IMG/VR virus record: IMGVR_UViG_3300034104_005687 | Coordinates: 248,001-312,000 of that record | DNA: 64,000 nucleotides | Reading direction: 5' to 3' (one strand) | In this document: positions 27,035 through 53,280 of the stretch, one piece after another | Position numbering within the stretch: the first letter of the stretch is position 1 | How the letters are laid out: each line of letters begins with the position of its first letter | Program-made: the position numbers and the translations under genes | The notes under the pieces: generated by a model | The model's database searches: none | What the model was told of the DNA's origin: nothing | The model's input: only the letters and a program-made list of their open reading frames with translations

Positions 27035-27297
27035 AATTGTTGGTTCTAACTGCTGCGTTGGCGCTGTCAGCATGCTCCACTCCTGTGCCAGTGAAACAAC
27101 CATTTCCTGTGGCTCCTGCTGCACTGCTGGAACGCTGTCCTGACTTGCTGGTCATTGATGACGGCAAAAACAGCATGCGAGACATGCTGAAAGTTGTGAT
27201 ACAAAACTATGCACTGTATTATCAGTGTGCAGAAAAGACTCACGGCTGGCAAGACTGGTACGGTGAGCAAAAAAGAATACATGAGAGCGTGCGATGA
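27031..27297 (+). CDS. Rz1-like outer-membrane lipoprotein spanin
   Basis: Lipobox 'LSAC', Pro-rich segment and two further Cys. Confidence 0.75.
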   Translation: MKLLVLTAALALSACSTPVPVKQPFPVAPAALLERCPDLLVIDDGKNSMRDMLKVVIQNYALYYQCAEKTHGWQDWYGEQKRIHESVR

Positions 27298-27641
27298 GAT
27301 ACAGAGAAATACTGGAATCTTGTTGGAAGGGCTATCAGCGTGTGCCAGGCACAGCTGAATACTCACCAGGCAGTTGTGAAAAGATCAGTGAAACAGATCT
27401 TGAAGAAGACCTGCGTAAATGGTTCAAACAAAAGTGGGTGAGATTTGGACCTGACGGCAAGATCCGTGGAGACTGTGCTAGAGGTTCAGAAAAGGAAGGC
27501 AAACCCAAGTGTTTGCCACAGGCCAAGGCACATGCCCTGGGCAAGAAGGGTCGTGCGTCAGCAGCGGCTCGCAAACGTCGTCAAGACCCTGACGCCAATC
27601 GCAGAGGAGCGGCCATCAACGTGGCCACAAAGAAAAAATGA
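27294..27641 (+). CDS. Basic hypothetical protein, putative internal head protein
   Basis: 'MRYREILE' leader followed by two Cys-containing modules, the second Lys/Arg-rich. Confidence 0.55.
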   Translation: MRYREILESCWKGYQRVPGTAEYSPGSCEKISETDLEEDLRKWFKQKWVRFGPDGKIRGDCARGSEKEGKPKCLPQAKAHALGKKGRASAAARKRRQDPDANRRGAAINVATKKK

Positions 27642-28648
27642 AAATCAATCAATTTGTAAACGAATCCCACATGACCTGTCCCGAGTGCGGCGGCCCTGCT
27701 TTCAGTGATCTGCTGTTGGCAGAAAAGAAAGACGCTTGCTATCACAAGGTCAAAGCAAGTGCCAAGGTATGGCCGTCAGCGTATGCGTCTGGACGACTGG
27801 TGCAGTGCCGCAAAAAAGGTGCTGCCAACTATGGCAACAAATCTGAAGGTGTGGCCGAAGATGCTGTGGCAGACTTTGTGGCTCGCGGCGGCCAGATACA
27901 AAAAGGAAAACTACACAAACCACGTAAGGGTGAAACTTGGCAAGGATCATCACATATTGGCGCAGCGGGTGGACAAGGTACAAAAGGTACAGTGTCAGGT
28001 CGAGCTGCAAACACCAACCCAAAGGGTGGTAAACCAGTGGTCAGTGCCGAAGGTTACAATCCTGAATACGATGACGAAGCAGGCATGGCTGACAACAATC
28101 TCGAAACGCTAGAACGTGCAGTCAAAGGCATTGATGACCTAATTCAAGCCGGTGACAACTTGCCAGAATGGTGCCAAGAAAAGATTGCTGTGGCAAAAAG
28201 CATGTTGGTAAGTGTATGGGACTACATGTATTCAGAAGAAGCCAGTGACGAAGTAGATCCTGAAGTCGATGAGATGTTTGAAGCCATGGATCAGTTAGCA
28301 GAAGAGCTGGCTGCCAAGCACAAGGTCAATGTAGACACTGTGTGGGAAAGTTTTGAACAGCTGGATGATCGCATTCTGTACGAAACTGCTGCATGGCGAC
28401 GCAAAGAAGGCAAAAGCAAAACAGGCGGACTCAATGCCAAGGGTGTGGCCAGCTATCGTCGTGAGAACCCAGGATCAAAACTGCAAACTGCTGTGACCAC
28501 AAAGCCAAGCAAACTGAAGCCTGGATCAAAGGCTGCCAAACGCAGAAAGAGCTTCTGCGCCAGAATGTCGGGCGTAAAAGGCCCAATGAAAAAGCCCAAC
28601 GGCAAACCAACTCGCAAAGCACTAGCACTGCGCAAGTGGAACTGCTGA
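27638..28648 (+). CDS. Modular basic/acidic hypothetical protein, putative internal head protein
   Basis: 'MKINQFVNE' leader; modules separated by LAE/VAE/SAE/LYE motifs. Confidence 0.55.
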   Translation: MKINQFVNESHMTCPECGGPAFSDLLLAEKKDACYHKVKASAKVWPSAYASGRLVQCRKKGAANYGNKSEGVAEDAVADFVARGGQIQKGKLHKPRKGETWQGSSHIGAAGGQGTKGTVSGRAANTNPKGGKPVVSAEGYNPEYDDEAGMADNNLETLERAVKGIDDLIQAGDNLPEWCQEKIAVAKSMLVSVWDYMYSEEASDEVDPEVDEMFEAMDQLAEELAAKHKVNVDTVWESFEQLDDRILYETAAWRRKEGKSKTGGLNAKGVASYRRENPGSKLQTAVTTKPSKLKPGSKAAKRRKSFCARMSGVKGPMKKPNGKPTRKALALRKWNC

Positions 28649-35710: not shown

Positions 35711-35712
35711 CT

Positions 35713-35880
35713 ATGGCAAAAATTATCGAAGACGTACTCGTCATTAAATTCAGCAAAATTGTGCGTGAAAACGACACAGACCCAGATCCAGCTATTACCA
35801 ATGAGCACATTACTGCCATGGTAGAAGTTGCACAGGAACTGGTGGGCAGTGCAGTGATTGTGGAAGTTGAACGAGCATAA
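35713..35880 (+). CDS. Hypothetical protein (55 aa; not in the ORF track)
   Basis: MAKIIEDVLVIKFSKIVREND...VEVERA; TAATG-coupled to the next gene. Confidence 0.65.
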   Translation: MAKIIEDVLVIKFSKIVRENDTDPDPAITNEHITAMVEVAQELVGSAVIVEVERA

Positions 35881-36679: not shown

Positions 36680-36692
36680 ACTAAATACCAGC

Positions 36693-38162
36693 ATGACCAC
36701 AATTGTAATCATGCCTGGCGGCTTTCACCCATTTCATGCAGGACATGCTGCATTGTATCAAAGTGCGCAACAAACTTTTCCCGATGCTGAAGTGTATGTT
36801 GCTGCCACCAACGATACCAGTTCACGACCTTTTCCGTTTGCTGTAAAAGAAAAGCTGGCTCGATTAGCCGGAGTCGATACAGGTCATTTTGTACAAGTCA
36901 AATCACCGTTTAGAGCAGAAGAAATTACCGCCAAGTTTGATCCACAAAAAGATGTGTTGATCTTTGTACGCAGTGAAAAAGACGCAGCACAACCGCCACA
37001 ACCTGGTGGTGTCAAAAAAGACGGGTCGCCTAGCTACTTGCAGCCTTTGTTGGGTGCTCGAAAGCTAGAACCATTTGCAAAACATGCCTACATGGCATAC
37101 TTGCCCACTGTGGAGTTTGGTCCTGGCATGACGTCGGCCACTGAGATTCGTAGTGCATGGCCCCGGCTAAACGAAAAACGCAAAACAGCTCTTGTGATGA
37201 GCCTGTACCCTAAAACGCAAACGAACCCTAAGTTGGCACAAACTGTGGTCAAACTGTTGGACACAGCATTAGGTGTAGTAGATGAGAGTGCGCTGGATAA
37301 CCTTCCACGCCCAAACAAACGTAATCAATTCAAGAGTCTACACAAACAAAGAAAACAACGTGGACTAGACGAGCAAGGTGTGGCGGAAGGCGTTCCTCAA
37401 CCTGGTAAATCATCTGGCAAACCTATATCCTGGATTGATCCTACCAAAGTTGTAACAGAATATCTAACGCTAGATGAGATATTCAAGTCAGTATCAGGCA
37501 TACCATACTATAACAATGTTGTAACAGATAGAGATAATAAAGACTTTACTTGGGGAGTAACTAAAAGAGTAATTCAATATGCAAAAGAATTAGTCATACG
37601 ACCCGATGCCTATAAAAACTGGCCTCCTATAATAGTTTTAGATGGCAAATTACAAGACGGGGCACATCGCATATCCACTATATACTTGATGCAACAAAGA
37701 GTTCAGCCAAATAACCCAATTTGGAAAAACGCTAAACTAAAAGTAGAATTTGGTACATCAGATAATGTAAAGCAAGGTGTGGCGGAAGGCAACGATGATA
37801 TCTGGGGACCGCAAGGAAACTTTGCTGGAGATATCAAAATAGATGTTGGCACAGCAAGCATGAAAAAAATACAAGCTGGTGATACTGTAAAGTATTTTGG
37901 AGAAACAGCACAAGTAATTGAACTAGATCCAGACAAAAACTATGCTCGAATCTCAGCCAATGGCAAGACTCTGAATGTGCGTTTATCTGACTTAAAACAG
38001 TTAGGTCGAGGTGTAGGCGAAAACCAAGGTTGGGCTGCTACCTTTACCAACGAAGACGACTACATAGAAGAAAAGTGGAGCAGCAAGTACAAAAACAGCA
38101 TCAACTGTGCTGCACCACGAGGATTCAGTCAACGTGCTCACTGTGCTGGCCGCAAAAAATAA
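36693..38162 (+). CDS. Modular protein: HxGH nucleotidyltransferase + ParB/Srx-like cassette + SH3-like module + basic Cys tail
   Basis: 'PGGFHPFHAGH' and 'SATEIR'; 'PPIIVLDGKLQDGAHRI' lies between two QGVAEG repeats. Confidence 0.7.
   Translation: MTTIVIMPGGFHPFHAGHAALYQSAQQTFPDAEVYVAATNDTSSRPFPFAVKEKLARLAGVDTGHFVQVKSPFRAEEITAKFDPQKDVLIFVRSEKDAAQPPQPGGVKKDGSPSYLQPLLGARKLEPFAKHAYMAYLPTVEFGPGMTSATEIRSAWPRLNEKRKTALVMSLYPKTQTNPKLAQTVVKLLDTALGVVDESALDNLPRPNKRNQFKSLHKQRKQRGLDEQGVAEGVPQPGKSSGKPISWIDPTKVVTEYLTLDEIFKSVSGIPYYNNVVTDRDNKDFTWGVTKRVIQYAKELVIRPDAYKNWPPIIVLDGKLQDGAHRISTIYLMQQRVQPNNPIWKNAKLKVEFGTSDNVKQGVAEGNDDIWGPQGNFAGDIKIDVGTASMKKIQAGDTVKYFGETAQVIELDPDKNYARISANGKTLNVRLSDLKQLGRGVGENQGWAATFTNEDDYIEEKWSSKYKNSINCAAPRGFSQRAHCAGRKK
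37372..37390 (+). repeat. 19-bp repeat AGCAAGGTGTGGCGGAAGG, copy 1
   Basis: Exact match to the copies at 37771, 45990 and 46344. Confidence 0.95.
37771..37789 (+). repeat. 19-bp repeat AGCAAGGTGTGGCGGAAGG, copy 2
   Basis: 399 bp (133 codons) after copy 1. Confidence 0.95.
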
Positions 38163-38245
38163 TTGATTTTTGTTTCAAAACCACTAGAAAAATTTTGTCA
38201 GGCCGTGTATAATCTGTAAATATTAGCACATTTTACGGAGATACC

Positions 38246-39148
38246 ATGGCAGACATTCAACCCACAACCACCCCACCTAGCAACACTGATCCCGCTCAAG
38301 TACAGATTCAAGTTGATCTAGATTACTTGCGCACTACTCGTGTTCATATCTGCATGCCATGCTACGGCGGCATGATGACTGAACAAACATTCATGAGCTT
38401 TATCAAATGGGGCAATACTTGTCGCCAATTGGGCATTGACTGGACTGTGGAAACCATGACCAATGAAAGCTTAATCAGTCGTGCACGAAACACACTCACA
38501 GCCAAGTTCTTGAACACACCCGAAAGCACTCACTTGATGTTTATCGACGCAGACATTGGCTGGGAACCCTGGCACCTGTTGGTCATGATCAATGCTCGCA
38601 AAGACGTGATCGGCGGCTTGTACCCCATGAAGAGTTTGCCTGTGAAATGGTGCGTCAACGGCATCCCGGGCAAAGAAGAAGGCACACCCGAACAACCACA
38701 CTTGGTAGAAGTCAGCAAAACTGGCACAGGTTTCTTGTTGATCAAGCGCGATGTGTTTGAAAAGCTGAATCAGCACCCTGCTACTCGTCCGTTCAACAAC
38801 GACATTGGCTTGCCCGAAGAACTCAATCCTTACATGAAAACCTACTTTGACACAGCAGTGCGTGAAAATCGTTACTACTCCGAAGACTGGACATTCTGTG
38901 AAAACTGGCGTGATCTAGGCGGGGAAGTGTACGTGGACAAACGTGTGCTGTTGCGTCACGTGGGCACCTATGTGTTTGACGGTCAAACACAAGACAAACT
39001 GTATCAGGACCTTGCTGCTCTGGTCAAAGGTCCCACACATCAGATTCCTAGCCAGTTGCCGCCTGCGGCTACAGAGGCTGCACCTGCTGCAGAGCCTGAA
39101 GTGTTTGCATCTAGCCAAACCCCCGAAACAACTTCTACAGCTCCGTAA
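38246..39148 (+). CDS. GT-A fold (GT2-like) glycosyltransferase
   Basis: 'ESLISRARN', DxD 'FIDADIGW', 'GTGFLLIKRDVF', 'SEDWTFC'. Confidence 0.7.
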   Translation: MADIQPTTTPPSNTDPAQVQIQVDLDYLRTTRVHICMPCYGGMMTEQTFMSFIKWGNTCRQLGIDWTVETMTNESLISRARNTLTAKFLNTPESTHLMFIDADIGWEPWHLLVMINARKDVIGGLYPMKSLPVKWCVNGIPGKEEGTPEQPHLVEVSKTGTGFLLIKRDVFEKLNQHPATRPFNNDIGLPEELNPYMKTYFDTAVRENRYYSEDWTFCENWRDLGGEVYVDKRVLLRHVGTYVFDGQTQDKLYQDLAALVKGPTHQIPSQLPPAATEAAPAAEPEVFASSQTPETTSTAP

Positions 39149-39162
39149 CGGTAAATACACTC

Positions 39163-42100
39163 ATGAACCTCCATGAGTTAGATTCCTACAACCTTGCAGA
39201 TGCAGTAAAATTCCACAATCGCCTTAACCCGCGGTTGTGGGACAAAACTGAACATCTGTTGCCCGAAGTACACAACAAACTGCTGGAAATAGCAGCCGAT
39301 TTTCAAGAATTTTTGGGTGTGCCTGATCTAGACGTAGTGGATGTCACAGTGTCAGGATCCAATGCAGCCTACAGTTATACCCCACACAGTGACATTGACC
39401 TGCATCTTGTGGTGCAAATGCCAGAGCAAAACAGCGAAGTATTTCAAGAACTTTTCAACGCCAAAAAATATCAGTACAACGATGAACACGACATACGCAT
39501 AGGGGGTGCTGATGTTGAACTCTATGTTCAACCTGCGGATCAAAAACATCATAGTCTAGGAATCTACAGTGTCAAAAACAATGACTGGGTCCAGGTACCA
39601 CGCAGACGCAAAATAGAACTAGACGACCAGTGCGTGGCTCATAAAACTGAAGATCTGGCAGCCAGGATTGATCAAGCTGTGGCATCCGGCAGCGAAGAAA
39701 CCATGCAGCGTTTGTGGGACAAAATTAAGACCATGCGTCAGACTGGGCTAGAGCAAGCCGGCGAGTTTGGCTGCGATAACTTGGTATTCAAAATGCTGCG
39801 TCGTTCTGGACACATCGAACGTTTAACGCAAGCCAAGACACAGGCTCATGATCGTGAGCTCAGTCTCACAGAAAAGAAAAAACGCAAGAAGGCCAAAAAG
39901 AAATTTACCTATGGTGCGTTTGGTGGCTGGTTCTATCCAGGCTACAACTTTGGCGCAGGCGAAACCGGTGATGCTGGTGGCGGAGACGGCGGTGGAGAAA
40001 GTGTACGCGAAGTTGATTCAGGCATTGCACAAGGCAGCGCCATTGGTGACGCTGGTGCACAAAGCACATGGGACGGGGTAAGTCCTGACACTGACGAATA
40101 TCTCAGTGAAGAAGCCGAAGCCGAAAGCATTGTGCGTGATTTCATTAGAGACACTGCTCGCCGACTGAACATTCAGAAACTACCGCGTGTGCGACTACAC
40201 AATGATGACAGCTGGAGCGAAAATGCCGGCAGCTTTGGCAGATACGTACCTGAAACACACGAACTACATGTGAACATGGCCGATCGCCACATCATGGACA
40301 TATTGCGTACCACTGCACACGAATTGGCACATTGTAGACAGCACGAACTGTCGCCGTTGCCTGCTGATGCTGGCAACACTGGCAGTCGTTGGGAAAATCA
40401 AGCACATGCCACAGCTGGTGTGATCATGCGTGATTATGCTGATGCACATCCAGAAATGTTTGACAAATCTGCTGTAACTGAAAGCTCAGGTTACATTCCC
40501 ACTGACGCAGAAAAGAACGATCCACGCTTTGTGATGGCCTTGAGTCCAGATGTTCGTCCAGGCGCAACAGGCAAGAATGCCAACAAGATGGCGTTGAGGA
40601 CCAATGCACAAGGTCAGCCACAATTGGCCAAGACCAATGGCCTAGTAGAAAGCCTGCGTCGAGAGTTTGCTCTCCTAGAGGATGAATTTCTAGGCGAAAT
40701 CAAAATGACCAGCAAGAATCTGCGAGCTGAAGCCGCCAAGACTGGTGCTATAGCTGGCATGGAATTTGAAATGATTGTGCCCAACACTGAAGGCAACGAT
40801 GACGGTGACTTGGAACCCGACTATGACGCAGACCAACGCTGCCGTAGCATAGATGATGCTGTGGAGTTTTTCTATGACGGCGACTACAATGGCCGTAGAG
40901 ATGTTGAAAACCTACGTGCAAGAATGAACAACGATTTCCAGGAATGGCGTGATGATAAAATTGGCAATGATTGGGATACGGATGGGGATGATTATGTGCG
41001 TGAGTGGGTTGCCAACAATGTAGACGAATCAGAATGGAACAACAATGAAGATGATCCTGAAGCTTCGCGTGAAGAAAAATTAGACAACTTTGCTGCTAAT
41101 GTTTACAATGATCCCGGCAGTAATTACCATCAACAAGCATTTGATGAGTTCCGAGAAGAAAATCAAGACTCATATGACGAAAGTGACTGGTTAGACGCTG
41201 AAGACCTAGATCGCATGAGCGGTGTTGAAAACGCCTATGATATTTCTTGGCCGCACTGGACCAGCGGTGGCGGCGGTGGCGAAGCCAGTATTGAAGATGT
41301 AGCACAAGAGTTTGAAAATGCCATAGGCCGTGACGTTCGAGCCAGTGGCAGCTATCATTCAGGACGAGTACAAAGACCCAGCCCTACACAACAACACTAT
41401 GTGGTCGAGCCCGATGGCAGTTTGGAGCCGGATGATACCAATGATCAAGGCCTGGAGTTTGTAAGTCCGCCCCTGCCCATTGACGATATACTAAGTGACT
41501 TGAACAAAGTCAAGGCCTGGGCCAAAGAATATGGCTGCTATACCAACGACTCAACAGGCTTGCACATCAACATCTCAGTGCCCAACTACAGCAGAGAAAA
41601 CTTGGACTTTGTAAAGTTAGCATTGTTAATGGGCGACGAGTATATCCTGGACTTGTTTGGTCGTGTTGGCAATACCTACGCTAAGTCAGCCATGAAGCTG
41701 GTCAAGGAAAAAGTACGTGAAAATCCAGATGCAGCAAAACAGTTGCTGGACAAGATGAAGGGTAACTTGGATGCACTTGCTACCAAGGCCATCCACTCAG
41801 GTATTACCAGCAAGTACACCAGCATCAACACCAAGGACGGACACATTGAATTCCGCTCACCTGGTGGTGACTGGCTGGATGACAACTTTGACAAGATTGA
41901 AAACACCCTGTTACGATTCACAGTGGCCATGAGTGCGGCACTGAATCCGGATGCTTATCGTCAAGAGTATCAAAAGAAACTTTACAAATTGTTGACTGCG
42001 GACCAAAAGGATTCAGACACAATCAAGTATTTTGCACAATATGCTGCTGGTGAGCTACCCAAGGCTGCCTTGCGTAGTTTTGTTAAGCAAGCACAACTAG

Positions 42101-43389
42101 AGCGCAAGGTAAAACGCGGCGAAACAATCAATCAAAAAATGTGGTGGAGCGTTACCAATCCCCCGCAAAGTTCTGCCGGTATAGAAGTTGTTGCTACCTC
42201 TAAAGAAGAAGCCATTGCCCAAGCCCTGGGACCAGATGGCTATCCTGGCTGGGCCAACACACGACAATCAGTTGTGGCCAAGCCTTTGCGTCCATTTGAA
42301 GACACCAGTTTGGACAAACCTTTTGTATGGAAAGTTCAAGGCACTGATTCTCCATATCAAAGACAAGGTATAGAAGTTGTTGCTTTTAGTGAGCTCGAAG
42401 CAATGCAAAAAGCCAGACGACGATGGAATTTAAACATAGGTACAACCCCAGAACAAGAATTCTTTAGAACCAACCGTTGGATTGCTACCACTGTTCGTCC
42501 TGCTGAAGAACCTGAACAAGATCAAGACAGTGCAACAACTGGCAACTGGGGAGCTTATGTAACGGTGCTTGATCGGTTTGCAGAATTCAACGACCAAGGT
42601 ACCACCCGTACTAGGAGATTCAGAGACCAGGCAGCAGCTGAGTCCTGGATACAGAATTATAATATAAGGTACCCTAGAAATGATCTTGAATTGACTGCTC
42701 GAGAGCTTGAACCTTCTGAACAAGCGCCGCAGTCTGGCCGTGCTGCCACAAGCCCAACAGGACAGTGGAAAATGGTTGATGGTTTAAATCGTGAAGTATA
42801 TCGTTTCCGTCCTGCAGAGAATACTAGAGCCAAAGCCAATGAGTTAGCCTCACTATGGGCACGGGAAAACAACTTTGATGGCAATTATCAAGTTGAACCT
42901 GCGGAAGATACTGCACAAACAGATACGAACCCACTAACACCAACAGGCTCTGGACCCTGGGAAGTAGCCAGCAGAAGCAACAATCAAGTTTATTACAACC
43001 CACCAAGCAGTAATCCTATTGAAGCAGAGTCACAATCAAGAACGTGGTTAAGACAAAACGATCACAACGAATCAGACTTTGAAGTACGAACTCGAGAAGG
43101 TGTTGGTGGCACAGACACAGCACAAGGTGGTATCATTGATATTGAACCAGATATATCACAATACAATGCACCACAAACACTGACCCGCCCTGGGCAAGAT
43201 CAGCAGGTGTTTACAGGCCAATGGAAAGTAACACTCGATGGCGAAGAGATTCATCGCTTTGGCGGCATTGGTAACAATCAAATGGATGCAAATCGTGTTG
43301 GCCGTGAATGGGCACGTAATCAAATACGTCAAGGATTATTATATCCTGCGGGCGATATCGAAGTCTTTCCAGTAATGGGAAATGCCTAA
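39163..43389 (+). CDS. Polyvalent protein: Pol-beta-type nucleotidyltransferase + HExxH metallopeptidase-like + amidoligase (COOH-NH2 ligase)-like + C-terminal repeats
   Basis: 'GSNAAY....SDIDLH'; 'AHELAH...E..A'; 'GMEFE', 'EPDGSL', 'GLEFVSP', 'TGLHIN', 'KYTSIN', 'IEFR'. Confidence 0.75.
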   Translation: MNLHELDSYNLADAVKFHNRLNPRLWDKTEHLLPEVHNKLLEIAADFQEFLGVPDLDVVDVTVSGSNAAYSYTPHSDIDLHLVVQMPEQNSEVFQELFNAKKYQYNDEHDIRIGGADVELYVQPADQKHHSLGIYSVKNNDWVQVPRRRKIELDDQCVAHKTEDLAARIDQAVASGSEETMQRLWDKIKTMRQTGLEQAGEFGCDNLVFKMLRRSGHIERLTQAKTQAHDRELSLTEKKKRKKAKKKFTYGAFGGWFYPGYNFGAGETGDAGGGDGGGESVREVDSGIAQGSAIGDAGAQSTWDGVSPDTDEYLSEEAEAESIVRDFIRDTARRLNIQKLPRVRLHNDDSWSENAGSFGRYVPETHELHVNMADRHIMDILRTTAHELAHCRQHELSPLPADAGNTGSRWENQAHATAGVIMRDYADAHPEMFDKSAVTESSGYIPTDAEKNDPRFVMALSPDVRPGATGKNANKMALRTNAQGQPQLAKTNGLVESLRREFALLEDEFLGEIKMTSKNLRAEAAKTGAIAGMEFEMIVPNTEGNDDGDLEPDYDADQRCRSIDDAVEFFYDGDYNGRRDVENLRARMNNDFQEWRDDKIGNDWDTDGDDYVREWVANNVDESEWNNNEDDPEASREEKLDNFAANVYNDPGSNYHQQAFDEFREENQDSYDESDWLDAEDLDRMSGVENAYDISWPHWTSGGGGGEASIEDVAQEFENAIGRDVRASGSYHSGRVQRPSPTQQHYVVEPDGSLEPDDTNDQGLEFVSPPLPIDDILSDLNKVKAWAKEYGCYTNDSTGLHINISVPNYSRENLDFVKLALLMGDEYILDLFGRVGNTYAKSAMKLVKEKVRENPDAAKQLLDKMKGNLDALATKAIHSGITSKYTSINTKDGHIEFRSPGGDWLDDNFDKIENTLLRFTVAMSAALNPDAYRQEYQKKLYKLLTADQKDSDTIKYFAQYAAGELPKAALRSFVKQAQLERKVKRGETINQKMWWSVTNPPQSSAGIEVVATSKEEAIAQALGPDGYPGWANTRQSVVAKPLRPFEDTSLDKPFVWKVQGTDSPYQRQGIEVVAFSELEAMQKARRRWNLNIGTTPEQEFFRTNRWIATTVRPAEEPEQDQDSATTGNWGAYVTVLDRFAEFNDQGTTRTRRFRDQAAAESWIQNYNIRYPRNDLELTARELEPSEQAPQSGRAATSPTGQWKMVDGLNREVYRFRPAENTRAKANELASLWARENNFDGNYQVEPAEDTAQTDTNPLTPTGSGPWEVASRSNNQVYYNPPSSNPIEAESQSRTWLRQNDHNESDFEVRTREGVGGTDTAQGGIIDIEPDISQYNAPQTLTRPGQDQQVFTGQWKVTLDGEEIHRFGGIGNNQMDANRVGREWARNQIRQGLLYPAGDIEVFPVMGNA

Positions 43390-43931
43390 TGCGAGCTAAT
43401 GAGTTTGTTGTTGAAGCACACGTTCCACCTATACGTGATCAGATTCGTGCTGACGTGAAAAAGAATGGTCCTGGTGAATATTTTGTGCGTGTAACTGCTG
43501 TAGACCAACTGGGATTTAGTGCCAGGCAAAAGTTTGGTCGATCGCCCGACATGGATGATCCCAACTTTGATGTAGACTACATTGGTGCAGGCCGAGGACG
43601 TCCTGCACTTTGGTTCTACCCAGTTAACGAATATCTCAAAAACAAAGACTTGTACGCAACAGAAAATCCTTATGTTTGGCTAGTTAAACTAAAAGACACA
43701 GCTTGGCTACAACCTGCTCGTCGTGGTGATTCAGGTGTGGCTAATCCGCCGCAGGGTAAACAACGTGTGGGTATTATGCGTATGAGTAATCCTCCGGCTG
43801 CTATATTCTTCCAGCCAGGATTTGATGTTGTAGGACGTTACTATGACTATGCAGGACAACACAAGCGTCACGGCGAAGTCAAGGGTCGTCCTGATCCTAG
43901 CTGGTTTGATCGTGTTAGAGGTCAATCATGA
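43389..43931 (+). CDS. Hypothetical protein with MRAxEF leader (putative internal head protein)
   Basis: Starts MRANEFVVE. Confidence 0.65.
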   Translation: MRANEFVVEAHVPPIRDQIRADVKKNGPGEYFVRVTAVDQLGFSARQKFGRSPDMDDPNFDVDYIGAGRGRPALWFYPVNEYLKNKDLYATENPYVWLVKLKDTAWLQPARRGDSGVANPPQGKQRVGIMRMSNPPAAIFFQPGFDVVGRYYDYAGQHKRHGEVKGRPDPSWFDRVRGQS

Positions 43932-44410
43932 GAGCACAAGAGTTTGTAGGCGAAAAAGTTTCTCCAGAAACTGCACAAGACGGTTTTCTTGATCAGCAGC
44001 TGGTCAACAACGGAGAATGGACAATCAAAGCCACGGGCGATACACGACGCTATGGTGACACAGTTGCCAATGTGTTGCATGTAAAGGTGTTTGATACCAA
44101 CACCAATGAAGAACTGGCCTGGGTCGATTTTCTTGTAAAAACTCGTAGAGAAGATGGAGAGCGATACATGGAGTCAGCATACACTTATGTAAATCCTCGA
44201 TACCGCGGCAAGGGACTGGCCAAGTTAATGTATCAGTATGCCAATAGCTTGGGCAACGACATTCAACCAAGTCAAATGCAAACTGACATGGGCAAAGGTA
44301 TGTGGAAAGGACTCAACAAGGCTGTGAAACAACCTCCTTTGCTGCCTACTGTGTCTGTGCCCGAGAAACCGCCCAGTGTGTGGCAGCGTTTGCGAAAGGC
44401 CGTGGTATGA
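43928..44410 (+). CDS. GNAT-family acetyltransferase with MRAxEF leader
   Basis: Acetyl-CoA motif A 'YVNPRYRGKGLAKLMY' and 'QTDMGKGMW'; starts MRAQEFVGE. Confidence 0.8.
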   Translation: MRAQEFVGEKVSPETAQDGFLDQQLVNNGEWTIKATGDTRRYGDTVANVLHVKVFDTNTNEELAWVDFLVKTRREDGERYMESAYTYVNPRYRGKGLAKLMYQYANSLGNDIQPSQMQTDMGKGMWKGLNKAVKQPPLLPTVSVPEKPPSVWQRLRKAVV

Positions 44411-44955
44411 GAGCAAATGAATTTACACAACCACGGGCTGCTGGCTGTATAATAGTAGCTGAGGACACAGGTCGTTGGTGTTTACAGCAACGCAGTGACA
44501 CAGTGAGTGATCCTGGCCTGTGGTCAACCTGGGGTGGCGGCTGTGAACTAGGAGAAACACTGGAACAATGTGTGCGTAGAGAGCTGGCAGAAGAAGGTGG
44601 ATATGTAGGCCCACTCCAGTTGGAACCACTCAGCAGCAACAGTCAGTATGCCACCTTTATTGGTCGTGTGCCACATGAATTTGAACCCAAAATCAATCGT
44701 GAATCAAAAGACTGGTGCTGGTGTGAGTCAGATCAACTGCCTGAACCCATGCATCCAGGACTTGCACAAGCGTTGAGTGAAAACTTTGCTGACGGCAAAG
44801 TAAAAGGAAAAAGCAGACCTGGGCGTGTAAAACGTGCAGGTGCCAGCTGCAATGGAAGTGTAACAGATCTAAGAGCAAGAGCCAAACGTGCATCAGGAGA
44901 AAGAGCCCGTATGTACCACTGGTGTGCCAACATGAAATCAGGACGTAAAAAATAA
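44407..44955 (+). CDS. Nudix hydrolase with MRAxEF leader and a basic C-terminal module
   Basis: Nudix box 'GGCELGETLEQCVRRELAEEGG'; ATG 44407 is coupled to the previous stop. Confidence 0.85.
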   Translation: MRANEFTQPRAAGCIIVAEDTGRWCLQQRSDTVSDPGLWSTWGGGCELGETLEQCVRRELAEEGGYVGPLQLEPLSSNSQYATFIGRVPHEFEPKINRESKDWCWCESDQLPEPMHPGLAQALSENFADGKVKGKSRPGRVKRAGASCNGSVTDLRARAKRASGERARMYHWCANMKSGRKK

Positions 44956-44999
44956 GAGGCGGTCTCCTGTAACTTAAACTTATTTCAAAAACAAACAGC

Positions 45000-45445
45000 A
45001 CAAGGTTGGCGGGCCGAATATAATACCGCTGGTGAATCCGCTCTGATGTGTGGCGGTAGCCAATTCTGTCCGCTGTTAACAGGCTTCTGTTCTCTACCCC
45101 TGTGCCGCAGGGATGCCCAGAGAAAACGTCTGCCCTGTGGCAGTAGCGTTAGAACAGTCGTACGGGTTGAGCGTAGCGCAAGCTAGCTTATTGTCAGATA
45201 CTGTCATAGATCCAATTGACACCGAGGGATCTTTAAAAGTCGTAGCAGGTAGGGTAAGGTACAGAGCCCAGAACAGTAGACAACACAAATACCTGCTGTC
45301 ATAAGTGTGGCTGAGCAACTCAGCGAATGTCTTGGCGCCCTGTTTCAGGGTGTCGTATGGCGTCACAATCTAGCGAAATATCTCTTGTGTATTTGTATAA
45401 ACAAAGCGAGCTGACAAGCGAAGCTTAGGATTGCGTAGCAATCCG
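45000..45445 (+). ncRNA. Unidentified, highly structured non-coding element (candidate large ncRNA and/or ssDNA structure)
   Basis: Core of the longest gap in the window (44956-45466), with at least nine readable stems, some with G-U pairs and GCAA loops. Confidence 0.6.
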
Positions 45446-45466
45446 ATCAGACTAAATACAAATACT

Positions 45467-46597
45467 ATGCTATTCAACGAACTCTTTAACTCTAGCCCTG
45501 AACCCCTTGCTGAGGGTGTATTGGATAACCCTGGGCAAGAACACAGCCCGGTTGCGTCTGCTATTATTCGTCGTATCTTGCTACAGCGTACAGACTTATT
45601 GAGCAAGTACGGTCCTGAGCGAGTGGGTGCAGCAGTTGACGATGTTGCTGACTTTGTGGGTGACACGGACGAAATTGGCAGTAGCGATGTATCCGGTTGG
45701 GTTCGCCAAGTTGAACAGATGTTGGGCAACATGACAGAAGCTGGATACAAGCGTGATGCGTATCAAAGAGATTACGACAATAGTGTTGCAGGCATGAGCA
45801 AACGTGACTCTTACGCCTACAGTCAAGACGGTGGTGGCAACGATGAACGCCACGATCTAGATCCCACTGAGTGGTACATTGTCAAAGATGGCAAAATGTT
45901 CAAAGCAACTGTGTATCCTACCCAAGTACAGTCAGCAATGTCACAGGGCTTTAGTCCCAGCAGAGAAGAAGCCAAAGCCAGAGCTGACCAGCAAGGTGTG
46001 GCGGAAGGCTCAGATTTTTTTGCAGGTAGCAAATTTGCCGACGAAGATGGCAATACATTTAGTGTAGAAAAAATAATAGCCTTTGCCAAAAAAAATCCAA
46101 AATATTTTCATAAAGATTTTCCATTATCAAAAATAAAACATGATCTTTCATGGTGGCAAGGAAATAAAGAAAGAATGATGAATGCTGATACAAGTTTTCC
46201 ACTGTTAGTAATTCAAAATGATGATGGACATCTTGGTGTTGCTGATGGGCTTAATCGCATGAAAAAAGCAGTTGATGTTGAGAAGAAAACAACTATTGAT
46301 GTTTATCTAGTTCCAAAAAAAGATATTATGAAGTTCTCTGAAAAGCAAGGTGTGGCGGAAGGTGATATCGGTCAGTTAGAAAAAGATATTGCTGCTGCAC
46401 CAGTTGAGCCTATTGCCAACATGGAAGGCTCCAACGAAAAGATTGGCAATATGGATGCTGATGCGTTTGATTCTGCCATGGCACGCCTTAAAAAGCTAGC
46501 AGGTGCAGGGCCAATGAAAACTGTGTGGGATCCTACCAAACGTGTTTACCGCAACATGCCCACAGCAGTTCAACCTCCTCAACAGCCCAAAAAATGA
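45467..46597 (+). CDS. Modular putative internal head protein with a ParB-like cassette
   Basis: CTAAATA upstream; 'MLFNELF...LAE'; 'FPLLVIQNDDGHLGVADGLNRMKKA' lies between two QGVAEG repeats. Confidence 0.65.
   Translation: MLFNELFNSSPEPLAEGVLDNPGQEHSPVASAIIRRILLQRTDLLSKYGPERVGAAVDDVADFVGDTDEIGSSDVSGWVRQVEQMLGNMTEAGYKRDAYQRDYDNSVAGMSKRDSYAYSQDGGGNDERHDLDPTEWYIVKDGKMFKATVYPTQVQSAMSQGFSPSREEAKARADQQGVAEGSDFFAGSKFADEDGNTFSVEKIIAFAKKNPKYFHKDFPLSKIKHDLSWWQGNKERMMNADTSFPLLVIQNDDGHLGVADGLNRMKKAVDVEKKTTIDVYLVPKKDIMKFSEKQGVAEGDIGQLEKDIAAAPVEPIANMEGSNEKIGNMDADAFDSAMARLKKLAGAGPMKTVWDPTKRVYRNMPTAVQPPQQPKK
45990..46008 (+). repeat. 19-bp repeat AGCAAGGTGTGGCGGAAGG, copy 3
   Basis: Exact match. Confidence 0.95.
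46344..46362 (+). repeat. 19-bp repeat AGCAAGGTGTGGCGGAAGG, copy 4
   Basis: 354 bp (118 codons) after copy 3. Confidence 0.95.
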
Positions 46598-46860
46598 GAG
46601 CCAGCGAGTTCATTGGCACCGTTGCCAAACGTAATGCTCGCGTAGGCTCCAGACATCAACGTGGGCACACTCCGCTGCCCAGATATCGTTACAGCAATGA
46701 TCAAAAATTGGATGAACTCAGTTTCCTGGGTTCTGAATGCACCAAGGACTGTTCAGGACATCGTGCTGGCTACGACTGGTACAAGAAACGTGGCTATGAA
46801 CCAGCCAGCTGGAGCAACAGCTTCAACCGTGGTGCTGCCTTGGCTGCTGCTGGCAAATAA
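46594..46860 (+). CDS. Small protein with MRAxEF leader
   Basis: Starts MRASEF; 'CTKDCSGHRAGYDW' module follows LDE. Confidence 0.65.
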   Translation: MRASEFIGTVAKRNARVGSRHQRGHTPLPRYRYSNDQKLDELSFLGSECTKDCSGHRAGYDWYKKRGYEPASWSNSFNRGAALAAAGK

Positions 46861-46893
46861 CAACTCACAATCACAGCTAGCATACATACGTGC

Positions 46894-47733
46894 ATGATTG
46901 ATATTTGCACTGTTGTATTCCAACAAGAAATTCCTGTGCTGAAATTACAGGCTCAAAGCATAGATTTGTACTGCCACGACATTGGCGTAAACTGCATTTA
47001 TGTTGTGGTCAACGATCACGACTCAGTTGTGCAACTGATTGATCCTGCATGGTGGGGCAGTATGAGCCATTTGGTTCGAGTCATACCCAGATCTGTGTTT
47101 TCAACTGACTTTGTGGACAATGGATGGGTCAGTCAGCAAGTACTCAAACTACTGGTGCCCGCCATGAGCTACAATCAGTGTACCATGGTATTGGATGCCA
47201 AAACTGTATTTGTTCAACCTGTGACATTGTCACAACTGTTTGATTCCACAGGCAAGATTGCCACAGGAACCCTGGAGCTGTATCCAGTGTTTGATGCTGC
47301 TAGACAAATTGTCAATGCCACATACAACATTGACCTACAGCATCAAATTGGACCCGGCGGCGTGCCGTTTGTGTTCAACAACAACACAGTGAGAATGATG
47401 ATTGCAGATACCACTGCACTGACTCAGCAGAACTTCCCTGAATGGTTTCAATCGCAAGGCATGCTCACAGAGTTTGTGCTGTATTCTGGTTATGTGCAAT
47501 ACCGACATGGTTCATTGACCAGTTTGTACACTACAGATCAACCATCAATACGGCCGGTAAACATGTGTCACAGTGAGGTTGCATTAGCGGATCGTATACT
47601 AGATCATATGCAGCAGGCCACCACAGTGAGCATACACCGAAACGCCTGGCCGCAGCTCACTGTGAGTCAGCAACAACAGTATCGTGATTTGCTGATCGAC
47701 AAAGGAATTACTCAAGCATGGGCACTAAAATAA
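46894..47733 (+). CDS. Glycosyltransferase-related (DUF6492-like) protein
   Basis: 'GWVSQQVLKL', 'VLDAK', 'TEFVLY'; same pattern as 50098..51114. Confidence 0.55.
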   Translation: MIDICTVVFQQEIPVLKLQAQSIDLYCHDIGVNCIYVVVNDHDSVVQLIDPAWWGSMSHLVRVIPRSVFSTDFVDNGWVSQQVLKLLVPAMSYNQCTMVLDAKTVFVQPVTLSQLFDSTGKIATGTLELYPVFDAARQIVNATYNIDLQHQIGPGGVPFVFNNNTVRMMIADTTALTQQNFPEWFQSQGMLTEFVLYSGYVQYRHGSLTSLYTTDQPSIRPVNMCHSEVALADRILDHMQQATTVSIHRNAWPQLTVSQQQQYRDLLIDKGITQAWALK

Positions 47734-48242
47734 ACGCACTGTGCATGGTTGCACACCCTGATGACTGTGTGATTTTTGCCTATAGTTATATTCACAATCA
47801 TCCAGAAATGAATTGGACCATTGGATACCTGACCTATACTGAACAAGACCCACGAGGTGCAGAGCTTGCTGCTTTTTGGCGCCGCCGAGGTATTGATACT
47901 GTGTTCTTGGGATTTGAAGATCATTGGCACGACAATGAACAAAAACAATTCACTAGATGGACAGAGGAACGTGCCGAACGAGCCTGTTGGGAGTTGGCAA
48001 AGAATTTTGATCTGGTGTTGACACATGATGAATTTGGCGACTACGGACACATACATCATGTGTTGGTACACAATTCAGTGCAATGGCATCCGCGTCTGGT
48101 CACATTTGCGCCACCAGGCCAAGGTACCACATACACTGTGCCTGCAGGTACATACAACCTCAATGAGTTGCCCATGCACGGTGAAATTGTGCAAGGCTTT
48201 CATCACAGTGAACACCGCAACAGTTACAAGGAAACAAAATGA
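47718..48242 (+). CDS. PIG-L/LmbE-family deacetylase
   Basis: 'VAHPDD' and 'THDEFGDYGHIHH'. Confidence 0.8.
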   Translation: MGTKINALCMVAHPDDCVIFAYSYIHNHPEMNWTIGYLTYTEQDPRGAELAAFWRRRGIDTVFLGFEDHWHDNEQKQFTRWTEERAERACWELAKNFDLVLTHDEFGDYGHIHHVLVHNSVQWHPRLVTFAPPGQGTTYTVPAGTYNLNELPMHGEIVQGFHHSEHRNSYKETK

Positions 48243-49051
48243 AATTAATGGTAGCAGGATGTAGTTATTCAGCAGTGAGTCAGCGCATGCCTGGCACCAG
48301 CTGGAGTGAGTTGCTGGCTCAACAACTAGGCTGGGACCTGACGAATCTAGCACGACAGGGTTGCAGCAACGGGGGCATACGTGTGCAGATTGATGAAATA
48401 CTGAGGCAACGTCCTGACTTTGCTGTGATCACTCCCACGTTCTGGGACAGAATGGAAATACCAGCTTCGGCAGCACCATTTGATTGGAAAAAAAGCACAG
48501 GTGGATGGAATCCAGAAATACAGCGTCACTTGCAAGATCGCACATTAAAAAATGGCTATAATCGTGACGATGGCATCAACAACGTCAACTACGGCAACAA
48601 CAACTACAACATGATCTGCGAGACTATCTACACCTTAGCAGAAAACTTTGATCATCCTTATCGTTCAGGGCTGATCAGCAAAACATCTCAGACTGCTGTA
48701 CGACACTACATAGATGGTATATATGATTCAGAATGGAAACGGCAACAAGACGAATGGATTGTTAAGTCGGGCATTTTTGAACTGCATCATGCTGGCATTG
48801 ACTTTTTGTTTGTGCCTGTGTTGTTGTGGCCCTTTGATCCTGCGTTGGGGGCAACTCAATGGCGCAAATCAATCAGTACTGCTGTGCCTGACCGCAACGT
48901 GATGTTTGACGAACGAGAATCAATATTGCCGTTGTGTGGCAACAATCCGTTTGAAGGAGAAGATCCTGGTTACCATTCGGGTGCCCGGGGCCAACAACTC
49001 ATTGCTGACAACTACTATCGCAGAATCACACAAGATTTTGGATTAGCGTAA
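48239..49051 (+). CDS. SGNH-hydrolase-like protein
   Basis: 'AGCSYS...SWSELLA...NLARQGCSN', C-terminal 'YH....Q..IA'. Confidence 0.55.
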   Translation: MKLMVAGCSYSAVSQRMPGTSWSELLAQQLGWDLTNLARQGCSNGGIRVQIDEILRQRPDFAVITPTFWDRMEIPASAAPFDWKKSTGGWNPEIQRHLQDRTLKNGYNRDDGINNVNYGNNNYNMICETIYTLAENFDHPYRSGLISKTSQTAVRHYIDGIYDSEWKRQQDEWIVKSGIFELHHAGIDFLFVPVLLWPFDPALGATQWRKSISTAVPDRNVMFDERESILPLCGNNPFEGEDPGYHSGARGQQLIADNYYRRITQDFGLA

Positions 49052-50101
49052 ATGTGGCTCAATCATGCGCTGCATTTCGGAGTATTTTTCTTGACGAAAC
49101 TCATATAGCCTGTGATGATTGTGGTCCAGGATGGATCGAGCTTGCAGTAGTATTTTCTGATGGTCTTGTTGACTCAACCATTTTACTTGCTCAAATGCAG
49201 CTTGCCAACGATCAATGTCACGTTCAATGCTGTCATAGCTTTCGTCCAGTATGGAATCAAAAGTCTTGAATCCAAAGGATCGAAGTTTTTTCAACCAGTG
49301 TGCTACGCCAAAGTGCACAAACAGTCTACGAGCATGTAGGCATTTGCCAATCTTTTCTGCCATGAGATAGCAGTCTCCAGATCCCAGTGTTTCTACCAAG
49401 ATGCTGTAGTATGTGCGATTGTATATTTCCCAGGGTTCGATGCTGCTGATAGAGTTGTCAAGATGTTCTCTTACCTCCCATGCAGGATCTAGATTTGGAC
49501 TCACATAAGGCCACACAATTTTTTGATCAGGAAATTGTTGTTGTACTTTGTCAGTGGTTTCGGTGATGTTGCCACCTACAAAAATGTCTCGGTAGGTAGC
49601 AATACTGTGATTCAGCAGTCCTGATTTTTCAAGACTCAGCATCACATAGTCTCGATGTTCTCTGCGTGTGCCACACAAACAGTCAAACAAATAAGGACGT
49701 GACAGTGGAAAATCATCACGTGGTGGGTTCCACTGTAGGAAAGTAAAACTCCACCATGGACGATACACTGTACGATGAGTCAAAGTTTCAGAAGCATACA
49801 GTCCTGCTACACTCAACAGCCAGTTGTTGGCATCGGTGGTATCAATCCAGTTGATCAACTCTGTCTGCGATCTAAACTCAATATCAGTAAACAACACCAG
49901 GTCAAACTGACTCAATTGTAGATTTTCAAATTCTGGTTTGTAAGAAAATTCTGTGGGTCGATTAAAGTACACTGGCAATACTGCAATCTTGGTAGGCTGT
50001 GCCAGTGCAGTGGCTAGATCCACTATCTGTGGATAATCAAAACCCCAATCTATGGCTTGGTAGCCCGGGCTATAAATTTTGAGTTGCGAGAAATCTGTCA
50101 T
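49043..50101 (-). CDS. Hypothetical protein, possibly glycosyltransferase-like (GT-B)
   Basis: 352 aa; 'SILVET...AEKIGK...F.TF..ILDESYD' pattern; lies in a glycan gene cluster. Confidence 0.45.
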   Translation of the reverse strand: MTDFSQLKIYSPGYQAIDWGFDYPQIVDLATALAQPTKIAVLPVYFNRPTEFSYKPEFENLQLSQFDLVLFTDIEFRSQTELINWIDTTDANNWLLSVAGLYASETLTHRTVYRPWWSFTFLQWNPPRDDFPLSRPYLFDCLCGTRREHRDYVMLSLEKSGLLNHSIATYRDIFVGGNITETTDKVQQQFPDQKIVWPYVSPNLDPAWEVREHLDNSISSIEPWEIYNRTYYSILVETLGSGDCYLMAEKIGKCLHARRLFVHFGVAHWLKKLRSFGFKTFDSILDESYDSIERDIDRWQAAFEQVKWLSQQDHQKILLQARSILDHNHHRLYEFRQEKYSEMQRMIEPHLR

Positions 50102-51114: not shown

Positions 51115-51710
51115 AATATTTCTTTGAATTGATCACGATGCCACAACGACATGTTGTTGGCATCACAGTCTGTGACCTGATCCAGCGGGACAGGAAAGTT
51201 CCAGGGTGGCAACTGCCAGTTGACACCAGATGATGGAAAATGTTCTGCAGAGTATTCAATATCAACGTTTTGACCAATGTATGTTTGGTGTGTGATAAGA
51301 ATCCAAGGAACACTGCTGTTGTACCAGTTGAGCCATAATTGACGACAATCATGATTGTTGAGATGTATAGCAACATCTCTCACAAACAGCAAATCAACTT
51401 TGGGTATGGGATCTGTGGTCACATCGTGTAACACAACATCAAGCTCAGGATGGCGATGCCAAGCATCTGCAACCATGGCCAAACTGATATCGCCCCCTTG
51501 GTACTGCACAAACTGTCCCACTCTCTTCATCCAATTGCAGTCGTTACACCCAGCATCAAAAATACTGGATATATTATGTTTCTTAAAAAGTTCAATAATG
51601 TTGTCACGTAAGCGTTGTGTACCGGGCACACTACTGGCCCCTGTTAAATTGCCAGCAGTATGAGTTGGTGAATACAACTTTGAAAATATTTTTTGTAAGG
51701 TTAGATTCAT
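51111..51710 (-). CDS. Class I SAM-dependent methyltransferase
   Basis: 'IFDAGCND.NW', 'GGDIS', 'DLLFVRDVAIHL'. Confidence 0.75.
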   Translation of the reverse strand: MNLTLQKIFSKLYSPTHTAGNLTGASSVPGTQRLRDNIIELFKKHNISSIFDAGCNDCNWMKRVGQFVQYQGGDISLAMVADAWHRHPELDVVLHDVTTDPIPKVDLLFVRDVAIHLNNHDCRQLWLNWYNSSVPWILITHQTYIGQNVDIEYSAEHFPSSGVNWQLPPWNFPVPLDQVTDCDANNMSLWHRDQFKEIL

Positions 51711-52799: not shown

Positions 52800-53096
52800 A
52801 TGAAAAGTCAGTTTGTCAAATTGGTGTTCGATGTATACTGTCGTTGGAGTGACACTCCTCCACGATATCGTTGCTATGTTGAAGACGAGTTGTTTGCTGA
52901 ACGAACATGGACATGGCAAGGTGTTCATCTTGAAGAAGCATTTCAGATACAGGCACCGCCGGGTCGATACAAAATAAGATATGAGTTGTTGGATACTGAA
53001 AAAGCAGAACTGCGTCTGCGCAACGGCAGAGTAGAAGTGGGATCAGCTGTGTTGCACAAAGGTGATGTGTTGGAGATAATCAATGAAAATGCGTGA
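52800..53096 (+). CDS. Hypothetical protein (98 aa)
   Basis: ORF after a late-type promoter. Confidence 0.6.
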   Translation: MKSQFVKLVFDVYCRWSDTPPRYRCYVEDELFAERTWTWQGVHLEEAFQIQAPPGRYKIRYELLDTEKAELRLRNGRVEVGSAVLHKGDVLEIINENA

Positions 53097-53280
53097 AATT
53101 ATGGAAACGGCCAGTGGTGGTGCCAGTGCAGGTGTTACATCAGCTGGCAGTATGGCTCCGGCTATAGGCAACATGGGCATGTTGTCAAGAACAGGCTCAG
53201 GCCTACTGACAGGTAAATATACATCAGAGCCGACGCCTAACACGCCGGCCAAATACAAAAGGAAAAAACGTGCTAGTTGA
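53083..53280 (+). CDS. Small putative head peptide (MKMREIME leader, basic tail)
   Basis: Leader resembles the other CTS-like leaders; Gly/Ser/Ala-rich with a Lys/Arg tail. Confidence 0.55.
   Translation: MKMREIMETASGGASAGVTSAGSMAPAIGNMGMLSRTGSGLLTGKYTSEPTPNTPAKYKRKKRAS

Follow-up and report, generated by a model that had tools for sequence, protein, structure and literature searches.

The 64,000-nucleotide stretch analysed here (the window) corresponds to about 248-312 kb of the 349-kb IMG/VR contig IMGVR_UViG_3300034104_005687, with which it is identical in sequence, and it encodes a set of proteins with a common N-terminal leader. Four neighbouring plus-strand genes, named here like all others by their start positions, begin with M-R-A-x-E-F (MRANEFVVE at 43389, MRAQEFVGE at 43928, MRANEFTQ at 44407 and MRASEFIG at 46594), and five more genes have related starts (MRYREILE at 27294, MKINQFVNE at 27638, MNLHELD at 39163, MLFNELF at 45467 and MKMREIME at 53083). 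All nine N-termini had been picked out in a first-pass annotation and were found where it had placed them. That annotation took the leader for a portable tag that packages proteins into the phage head, a reading that the comparisons below support. The features are collected in Table 1; the small leader proteins are mostly basic, with isoelectric points (pI) of 8.7-10.7.

The family-B DNA polymerase encoded in the window shares 50% identity with its counterpart in Sinorhizobium phage Phosso, 47% with that in Agrobacterium phage Atu_ph07 and about 41% with those of the 121Q/Rak2 group, with remoter matches extending through the T4-like phages, and on these sequence matches the source is a T4-related jumbo myophage. 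A DnaJ-like gene followed by one for a ClpA-like ATPase is syntenic with gp293 and gp292 of Atu_ph07, a phage for which 16 T4 core proteins, head proteins among them, have been reported (PMC6102473). No head genes lie within the 64-kb window. A nucleotide search with positions 39000-47000 against GenBank phage DNA gave no match, nor did tblastn searches of GenBank phages with the 43389 and 43928 proteins, while the 27294 protein gave a single weak match.

The likeness among the leaders is genuine and goes well beyond what chance would give. When each of the 1735 ATGs in the six frames of the window was scored with a position matrix derived from the N-termini of 98 homologues, the starts of 43389, 43928, 27638, 46594 and 44407 all fell within the top six. 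In a motif search across the window, a genome-wide one having been suggested as a check, the looser pattern M[RKLIN]xx[ED][FILV][FILVM] was found at 7 of 66 gene starts and at none of 396 internal methionines (Fisher p = 9e-7); this test is slightly circular, as the starts of 45467 and 46594 were chosen, and one of the seven matches (57649, after the DNA polymerase) is a probable false positive. It could be argued that the leaders arose by chance, from mis-called starts or from a constraint on initiation. Three of the four core genes do begin in an ATGA that overlaps the stop of the upstream gene, which makes codon 2 begin with A and favours Arg or Lys at position 2. However, the overlap cannot explain positions 3-9, 43389 uses CGA after a TAATG, hundreds of homologues begin at the same place and both the matrix and the pattern test reject chance, so that we find this explanation scarcely credible.

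The stop/start overlaps imply that the core leader genes are translationally coupled. The starts of 44407 and 46594 are internal ATGs of longer, mechanically called open reading frames (beginning at GTG 44302 and GTG 46525), each with its ATGA overlap; the start of 44407 is supported by about 110 of 120 homologues of its Nudix protein, which begin exactly there and with MRAxEF. For 45467 the start is the first ATG in a frame that opens with TTG, and its orthologues begin at the same ATG.

In a DNA alignment of the core starts, identity is confined to six codons with nothing in common upstream, and within these codons there are synonymous differences (CGA/AGA, GCT/GCA/GCC, GAG/GAA, TTT/TTC). 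Since the codons differ and no upstream DNA is common to the genes, the constraint acts on the peptide. This bears on the proposal that the common start is a functionless by-product of cassette shuffling, left by recombination at the 5' ends of genes. The loci are indeed hyperplastic, with shuffled modules and with genes fused or split between contigs, but such a history would not account for the differing upstream DNA and the synonymous codon variation; moreover, the peptide is kept with conservative replacements among proteins at no more than 50% identity, whereas a neutral peptide would diverge at the rate of the linkers, the opposite of what is observed. We therefore consider a mere trace of shuffling very improbable.

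As had been claimed, the proteins are unrelated after the leader, the four core proteins having no pairwise similarity beyond it. The concern that the leader might be equally common on non-virion genes was not borne out in the window, where no recognisable replication, lysis or metabolic gene has it. The claim that the cargo includes GNAT and Nudix enzymes held unevenly. The Nudix assignment is solid (44407; PF00293, 8.8e-19, 68 bits), with a Nudix box (GX5EX7REUXEEXGU type) that reads GGGCELGETLEQCVRRELAEEGG, and the last 60 or so residues of this protein recur in the leader proteins L005:9363, L013:4430 and L015:11452. The 43928 protein alone stays below the Pfam cut-offs for GNAT (17-19 bits against 20.7-30; E 1e-3 to 5e-3), although the motif RYRGKGLAK is present; its homologue L006:16112 passes the GNAT cut-off (34 bits) and aligns with it (E 3e-10), and by this transitive sequence evidence the 43928 protein is probably a GNAT.

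The cargo of 43389 gave nothing in Pfam searches with 50 family members or in a profile search against PDB sequences, and its score of 0.81 in the ESM Atlas is within noise. Its model had no significant Foldseek match (best E 0.08 in PDB and 4.6e-3 in BFVD); the weak, non-significant matches are mostly to ADP-ribosyltransferase domains in PDB and to ART-PolyVal-like entries in BFVD, and we treat an ADP-ribosyltransferase-like fold as a lead only.

The long 39163 protein combines a nucleotidyltransferase-like N-terminal module, an HExxH motif at residue 386 and an Amidoligase_2 domain (1.3e-8), with no significant repeats in a self-BLAST. Parts of it are found behind leaders elsewhere: residues 293-422, which hold the HExxH, occur alone behind a leader in L006:18719 and L008:15487, and the nucleotidyltransferase-like module follows the leader MYIREFSEG in P0354. 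Relatives reach 3303 residues. The DUF6321 of 27638 is a Pfam match at 5e-22, and the C-terminal module of 46594 recurs in two other leader proteins. Finally, the multi-module 36693 protein has no leader and may, from its linkers, be processed like the leader proteins; relatives starting M..IVIMPGGFHPFHAGH hold the same GNAT module as 43928.

Table 1. Leader genes, associated multi-module genes and GVAE linkers in the window. A stroke marks the end of the leader.
Feature	Coordinates	Strand	Remarks
Leader protein MRYREILE, 115 residues, very basic (pI 10.0)	27294..27641	+	P0303 starts MRYSEILEACWKGY
Leader protein MKINQFVNE/S, 336 residues, basic modules, one GVAE linker, C-terminal DUF6321	27638..28648	+	
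GVAE linker in the 27638 protein	27848	+	
Multi-module protein without leader, cytidylyltransferase/NMNAT-like N-terminus, two QGVAEG linkers	36693..38162	+	CTP_transf_like, weak
GVAE linkers in the 36693 protein	37377-37388, 37776-37787	+	
Polyvalent-type protein, 1408 residues, MNLHELD flavour	39163..43389	+	Coupled translationally to the leader genes
Leader protein MRANEFVVE/A, 180 residues	43389..43931	+	Conserved domain, unknown function
Leader protein MRAQEFVGE/K, 160 residues, probable GNAT module	43928..44410	+	Sub-cut-off Pfam match plus homologue
Leader protein MRANEFTQP, 182 residues, Nudix plus basic Cys-containing C-terminal module of about 60 residues	44407..44955	+	
Leader protein, MLFNELF flavour, 376 residues, multi-module, two QGVAEG linkers	45467..46597	+	
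GVAE linker, predicted protease site in the 45467 protein	45995..46006	+	
GVAE linker, predicted protease site in the 45467 protein	46349..46360	+	
Leader protein MRASEFIG, 88 residues, basic (pI 9.9)	46594..46860	+	C-terminal Cys-containing module
Candidate leader protein MKMREIME, 65 residues, basic (pI 10.7), weakest of the set	53083..53280	+	Sequence pattern only

Conservation of the leader and its junctions among relatives

The leader is kept in more than 300 homologues across three cargo families, and always at the N-terminus. About 290 members of the 43389 family are known from metagenomes, some of them on contigs as long as 513 kb. Across an alignment of 50 members, with a mean column identity of 61%, M1 and E9 do not vary and at least 90% of the sequences have A10. 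The GNAT module of 43928 has 390 relatives at E <= 1e-3, and the leader stands at the start of 98 of the best 150 representatives (from a library clustered at 50% identity), with R at 85%, A at 64%, E5 at 92%, F at 69%, E9 at 80% and I, V or L at position 7. The tag occupies the start of the polypeptide even where hundreds of residues precede the GNAT module (as in P0361), and it is never internal. In an AlphaFold model of the 43389 protein (predicted local distance difference test score 83.8), residues 1-8 score below 50, and because of this low confidence the leader is predicted to lie outside the fold.

The view of the leader as a portable tag is borne out by the relatives. In 16 related IMG/VR loci the 43389 homologue belongs to a cluster of leader genes, two to six in number and varied in length and content, and in relatives the leader precedes GNAT, Nudix, Zeta_toxin/AAA_33 kinase, Amidoligase_2, GH19, GP88, zincin and small basic modules, with Pfam matches in the related loci to GP88, GH19, GNAT, Zeta_toxin/AAA_33 and Amidoligase_2. 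The more divergent starts that the first-pass annotation had grouped with the core, MNLHELD, MLFNELF, MKINQFVNE and MRYREILE, likewise recur in relatives as flavours of the tag. Orthologues of 45467 begin MLFNELF or ML[IV]NELF, their modules are reshuffled behind other flavours, and the relatives of this protein include ML[FIV]NELF, MKINQ[IV]I (compare 27638), MNLNDLYEM (compare 39163), MRYSEILEACWKGY (compare 27294), MKVTEIITEA and MRLFEFT.

In one related contig (L008, 13820-14926) the leader MRAVEFTNV heads a protein whose kinase domain, of the zeta-toxin/AAA_33 type, is intact; this is possibly an injected kinase that acts on the bacterial host.

In multi-module relatives the modules are joined by the linker (Q/E)GVAE(G/E/D). 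GVAE occurs 151 times in the 47,331 residues of the 45467 relatives, against about one expected (a rough estimate from typical residue frequencies), and 118 times in the 69,828 residues of the GNAT representatives. Translation of the window in six frames gives five copies, all in plus-strand genes of this set (one in 27638, two in 45467 and two in 36693). Where a GNAT module is internal it is preceded by ..QGVAE/EVNP.., which aligns column for column with the N-terminal MRAQEFVGE/KVSP, and leader and linker thus both end in hydrophobic-x-Glu just before the module. A second alignment places the boundary of another leader: in P0275, which starts MKITELLTES/AKKGLY, the sequence from residue 11 onward aligns with residue 2 onward of a stand-alone gene of a T7-like pelagiphage.

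Likeness to the T4 capsid-targeting sequence

The internal proteins of T4 were said in the first-pass annotation to have a tag of the MKTYQEFIAE type, and this can be read directly from NC_000866: ipII starts MKTYQEFIAE/ARV, ipIII MKTYQEFIAE/ASV and ipI MKTFKEFTSTT. The window leaders, with the consensus M-R-A-x-E-F-[IVL]-x-E followed by A in the 43389 family, have the same motif as ipII and ipIII, though one residue shorter. The likeness extends past the leader in homologues of 43389, which start MRAQEFVIE/ARV, MKAQEFIVE/AQV or MRATEFITE/AKV (family pattern MRA[QNT]EF[IV]xE/A[KQR]V), while the leader of 44407, MRANEFTQP, resembles that of ipI. Starts of the same style are found on other T4 head proteins (gp24 MAKINELLRE, gp22 MLKEQLIAEA, gp67 MEGLIEA and gp21 MNEPQLLIE).

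In T4, whose internal proteins are basic, packaging requires no more of IPIII than its first ten residues, of which 4 and 7 matter in targeting and 8 and 10 in processing; the protease gp21 cleaves behind [L/I]-x-E, and with Asp at position 10 cutting stops but targeting does not (PMC9026906). Both the leader end and the QGVAE junctions fit this cleavage rule in their sequences, with Val commonly in place of Leu or Ile. A Glu that may serve as a processing site ends the leaders of 43389, 43928 and 27638 (V-x-E), but not those of 44407 and 46594; in the leaders of 27294 and 53083 the Glu is at position 8.

Proteolysis could also be the whole story, the leader being a propeptide that keeps enzymes inactive until a protease removes it and that has no part in targeting. 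The [IVL]-x-E end and the QGVAE linkers point to proteolysis and would suit this explanation. What it leaves unexplained is the conservation of residues 2-7 (R, A, E, F and a hydrophobic residue), which goes beyond the needs of a cleavage site and persists in the Nudix family despite the missing cleavage Glu, and the equivalent T4 residues 4 and 7 serve in targeting (PMC9026906). A propeptide function alone is, in our judgement, distinctly unlikely.

The machinery that such a tag would need is encoded in related phages. A gp21-family protease is found in more than 100 IMG/VR loci of the lineage; gp204 of Atu_ph07 matches T4 gp21 (32% identity, E 5e-18), and a homologue of gp21 is likewise encoded by the Rak2-like phage K64-1. 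On related jumbo contigs the genes run in the order portal, a protein of 66-86 residues, a scaffold-like protein, the gp21 homologue, a protein of 364 residues and, last, the major capsid protein. This order corresponds to that of T4 genes 20-67-68-21-22-23, and the small protein between portal and protease has a leader-like start (MRSNEFLVE, MRARDFLTE, MLLNEFFYF or MILRELFYF). Proteases of this jumbo clade begin with an L-x-E near residue 7, and by eye the capsid proteins show, around residue 40, a Y-L-[SA]-E followed by [SN]-A, which resembles the F-L-T-E before AEIGG in T4 gp23. On contig L122, the only case of such linkage seen, two leader genes lie a few kb upstream of the portal, protease and capsid genes.

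Our preferred explanation, to which we give a probability of roughly 0.7, is that the nine residues M-[RK]-[AIV]-x-[ED]-[FIL]-[IVL]-x-E form a signal for capsid targeting and processing like that of T4, carried by a shuffled set of effectors. Because the tag is nearly identical to that of T4, the phage probably loads the tagged proteins into its head for delivery with the DNA, and uncultured relatives in their thousands seem to follow the same practice. Core binding, cleavage, presence in the virion, injection and action of the enzymes on the host are steps that we infer, and they may be pictured as follows. Residues 1-7 (MRAxEF and the hydrophobic residue after it) would attach to the scaffolding core, and the tagged protein would in this way be enclosed as the shell forms around it. 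A gp21-family prohead protease would then cut after the Glu of [IVL]-x-E and, in multi-module proteins, after QGVAE, and the freed modules would remain among the DNA in the head and enter the cell with it. Leaders without Glu9 (44407 and 46594) might be targeted without being cut, like the T4 Asp-10 mutant. The very basic small modules are probably associated with the DNA. As for the enzymes, our guesses are that the Nudix and NMNAT-type proteins act on NAD or nucleotide signals and that the GNAT modifies host proteins.

Several observations weigh against this explanation. Two of the four core leaders (44407 and 46594) have no Glu at position 9, and in the Nudix family the tag continues directly into the first strand of the fold, which together with the missing Glu makes cleavage doubtful there. 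The protease, scaffold and capsid genes of IMGVR_UViG_3300034104_005687 lie outside the window and were not found; when IMG/VR was scanned with the protease of Atu_ph07, with an alignment of proteases and with a capsid protein, 44, 80 and 80 loci came back, none from this contig, at which the scans were not aimed. The virion proteomics of Atu_ph07 offer a mixed picture. The counterpart of the small head-module protein, gp199 (MKLTELF), was detected in purified virions, but on one peptide, and gp199 is the only leader match in the approximately 93 kb of Atu_ph07 scanned; no leader-gene cluster is present in the syntenic region of that phage (DnaJ-ClpA to polymerase). Its virions also contain the protease gp204 (seven peptides) and a Nudix hydrolase, gp257 (four peptides, 43% coverage), but the latter is no orthologue of 44407 and has no leader.

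The tag might instead be recognised by something other than the head, such as the phage ClpA-type unfoldase or DnaJ, which would control how stable the proteins are or how they fold, or it might direct them to the tail, the baseplate or a membrane. The presence in the window of the ClpA-like ATPase after the DnaJ-like gene, in synteny with Atu_ph07 gp292 and gp293, and the Nudix leader without a cleavable Glu would both be in keeping with another receptor. Yet the known N-degrons of the ClpS/ClpA system begin with F, L, W or Y and not with Met, there is no hydrophobic stretch suited to a membrane, and the correspondence with the T4 capsid-targeting sequence runs residue by residue. The leader-like start of the protein encoded between portal and protease, and the protease-type end in register with QGVAE, likewise speak for the head, and we judge a different receptor to be unlikely.

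Several modules found behind the leader have counterparts among the head genes of other phages. The 27638 protein is 64% identical to gp45 of pelagiphage Eistla, which stands alone, without a leader, between the scaffold and capsid genes, and the AKKGLY module of P0275 is common to Eistla gp44. In the cyanomyophage S-RIM12, a DUF6321 homologue lies between terS and terL as a basic protein of 391 residues with an internal ..EEFVNE/K... T4-type myophages showed both the tag and the cleavable junctions, while neither was seen in the two podoviruses examined; T7-like podoviruses have, to our knowledge, no prohead protease.

T7-like marine podoviruses encode two or three extremely basic proteins of tiny size (Eistla gp43-gp45, L218 4732-5237; P-GSP1, L219 5022-5770), which have homologues among the modules of the jumbo-phage leader proteins. 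The Eistla genes sit between the scaffold and capsid genes, and the tiny basic podovirus proteins are candidates for DNA-condensing internal head proteins.

Neighbouring genes

The two upstream leader genes, 27294 and 27638, lie inside a lysis cassette (26546-29285) made up of a membrane protein (26546), an overlapping lipobox lipoprotein (27031) and a GH19-type endolysin (28668); the first two look like a spanin pair. The DnaJ-like gene and the ClpA/ClpB-like ATPase, of 756 residues, occupy 31981-35073 and could be a phage chaperone or unfoldase for head or cargo proteins.

Within the main cluster, the 510-bp gap between the Nudix gene and 45467 (44956-45466) contains no convincing open reading frame, tRNA or Rfam family, and its predicted RNA fold is only marginally better than those of shuffled sequences (z = -1.69). 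A scan for promoters and terminators around the cluster gave nothing usable, the promoters scoring no better than in shuffles. The T4 late-promoter word TATAAATA occurs four times in the window (15914, 35698, 52767 and 54906) against 0.98 expected, a number reached in none of 100 shuffles. One copy precedes the plus-strand run 35707-44955 and another lies just before the DNA polymerase gene; the word does not stand specifically ahead of the leader genes.

Downstream, the leader genes adjoin a sugar/modification cluster (46894-52759) that starts with DUF6492 (46894) and a PIG-L-type deacetylase (47718) and includes four minus-strand genes, the last of them radical-SAM-like with a CxxxCxxC motif (51707-52759). 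A ferritin/Dps-like protein (53270-53713; PF00210, 2.7e-18) follows directly on the candidate leader gene 53083. Far upstream, after a tail-fibre-like protein of 1464 residues, two adjacent genes (6038-6931 and 6947-8464) encode a near-identical N-terminus, M-[TS]-S-x-INPNNID..YPVAGQDN, and are probably paralogous fibre or receptor-binding proteins.

Relation to known systems and meaning

The closest parallel is the capsid-targeting sequence of T4 itself. Both are N-terminal tags of about ten residues, [KR]-[TA]-x-[QN]-E-F-[IV]-x-E then Ala, mostly with an [L/I/V]-x-E end, and both stand on unrelated, mostly basic and fast-evolving proteins with clustered genes; the settings are also alike, ipII and ipIII adjoining the lysozyme gene e and nudE and two of the window leader genes sitting within the lysis cassette. 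The window tag differs in being one residue shorter, in having several flavours (MRAxEF, MKINQ[FIV], ML[FIV]NELF and MNLxDLY) and in sometimes dispensing with the cleavage Glu. Compared with T4, the window and its relatives have far more such proteins per genome, true enzymes (GNAT, Nudix, kinase, amidoligase and GH19) and multi-module polyproteins.

The variable internal-protein genes of the T-even phages, which also have starts like the capsid-targeting sequence (PMC9026906, PMC3012670), offer the same combination of conserved tag and diverse cargo and are thought to encode injected counter-defence proteins, but they belong to close relatives of T4 and encode small inhibitors, whereas the present lineage is a distant one of jumbo phages with shuffled enzymatic modules. 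In phiKZ, 201phi2-1 and SPN3US, many packed inner-body or ejection proteins are cut after Glu by a diverged gp21-type protease (PMC9026906); in that lineage, however, which is without the T4-like replication core, cutting follows [S/A/G]-x-E, behind propeptides that vary and are long, and a short tag of the portable kind is not known. Polyvalent proteins (Iyer et al. 2017, PMC5512222) consist of effector domains in series, whose delivery together with the DNA has been proposed, a description that 39163 and the shuffled modules appear to fit, but here many of the modules are separate genes, each with its own tag; the terms 'capsid targeting' and 'N-terminal leader' are absent from the text of that paper. 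The basic genes in the head modules of T7-like pelagiphages and cyanophages contain the same modules, stand-alone and untagged in podoviruses and joined in one protein in S-RIM12.

The principle is therefore already known from T4 and its close relatives (PMC3012670, PMC9026906), and the novelty lies in the lineage, in the scale (hundreds to thousands of proteins), in the enzymatic cargo, in the flavours of the tag and in the standard QGVAE junctions; a search of the full-text literature gave no account of such tags for Atu_ph07-like phages or for other jumbo phages outside the phiKZ group. We see an even chance that T4-related jumbo phages of natural waters and soils have a very large undescribed system, in which tagged enzymes, small basic modules and polyproteins are packed, cut and injected as ready-made effectors; Nudix and NMNAT-type enzymes directed at NAD or nucleotides, acetyltransferases and kinases would then be examples that counter host defence.

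If the tag is an address for the head, the injected proteins of uncultured jumbo phages could be listed from sequence alone, and such a list is where early counter-defence functions would be expected. Tag and linker could, furthermore, become tools to load cargo into phage heads. The T4 principle itself would, if this is true, be old, widespread and heavily used, and would extend from a handful of small proteins to enzymes and linker-cut polyproteins.

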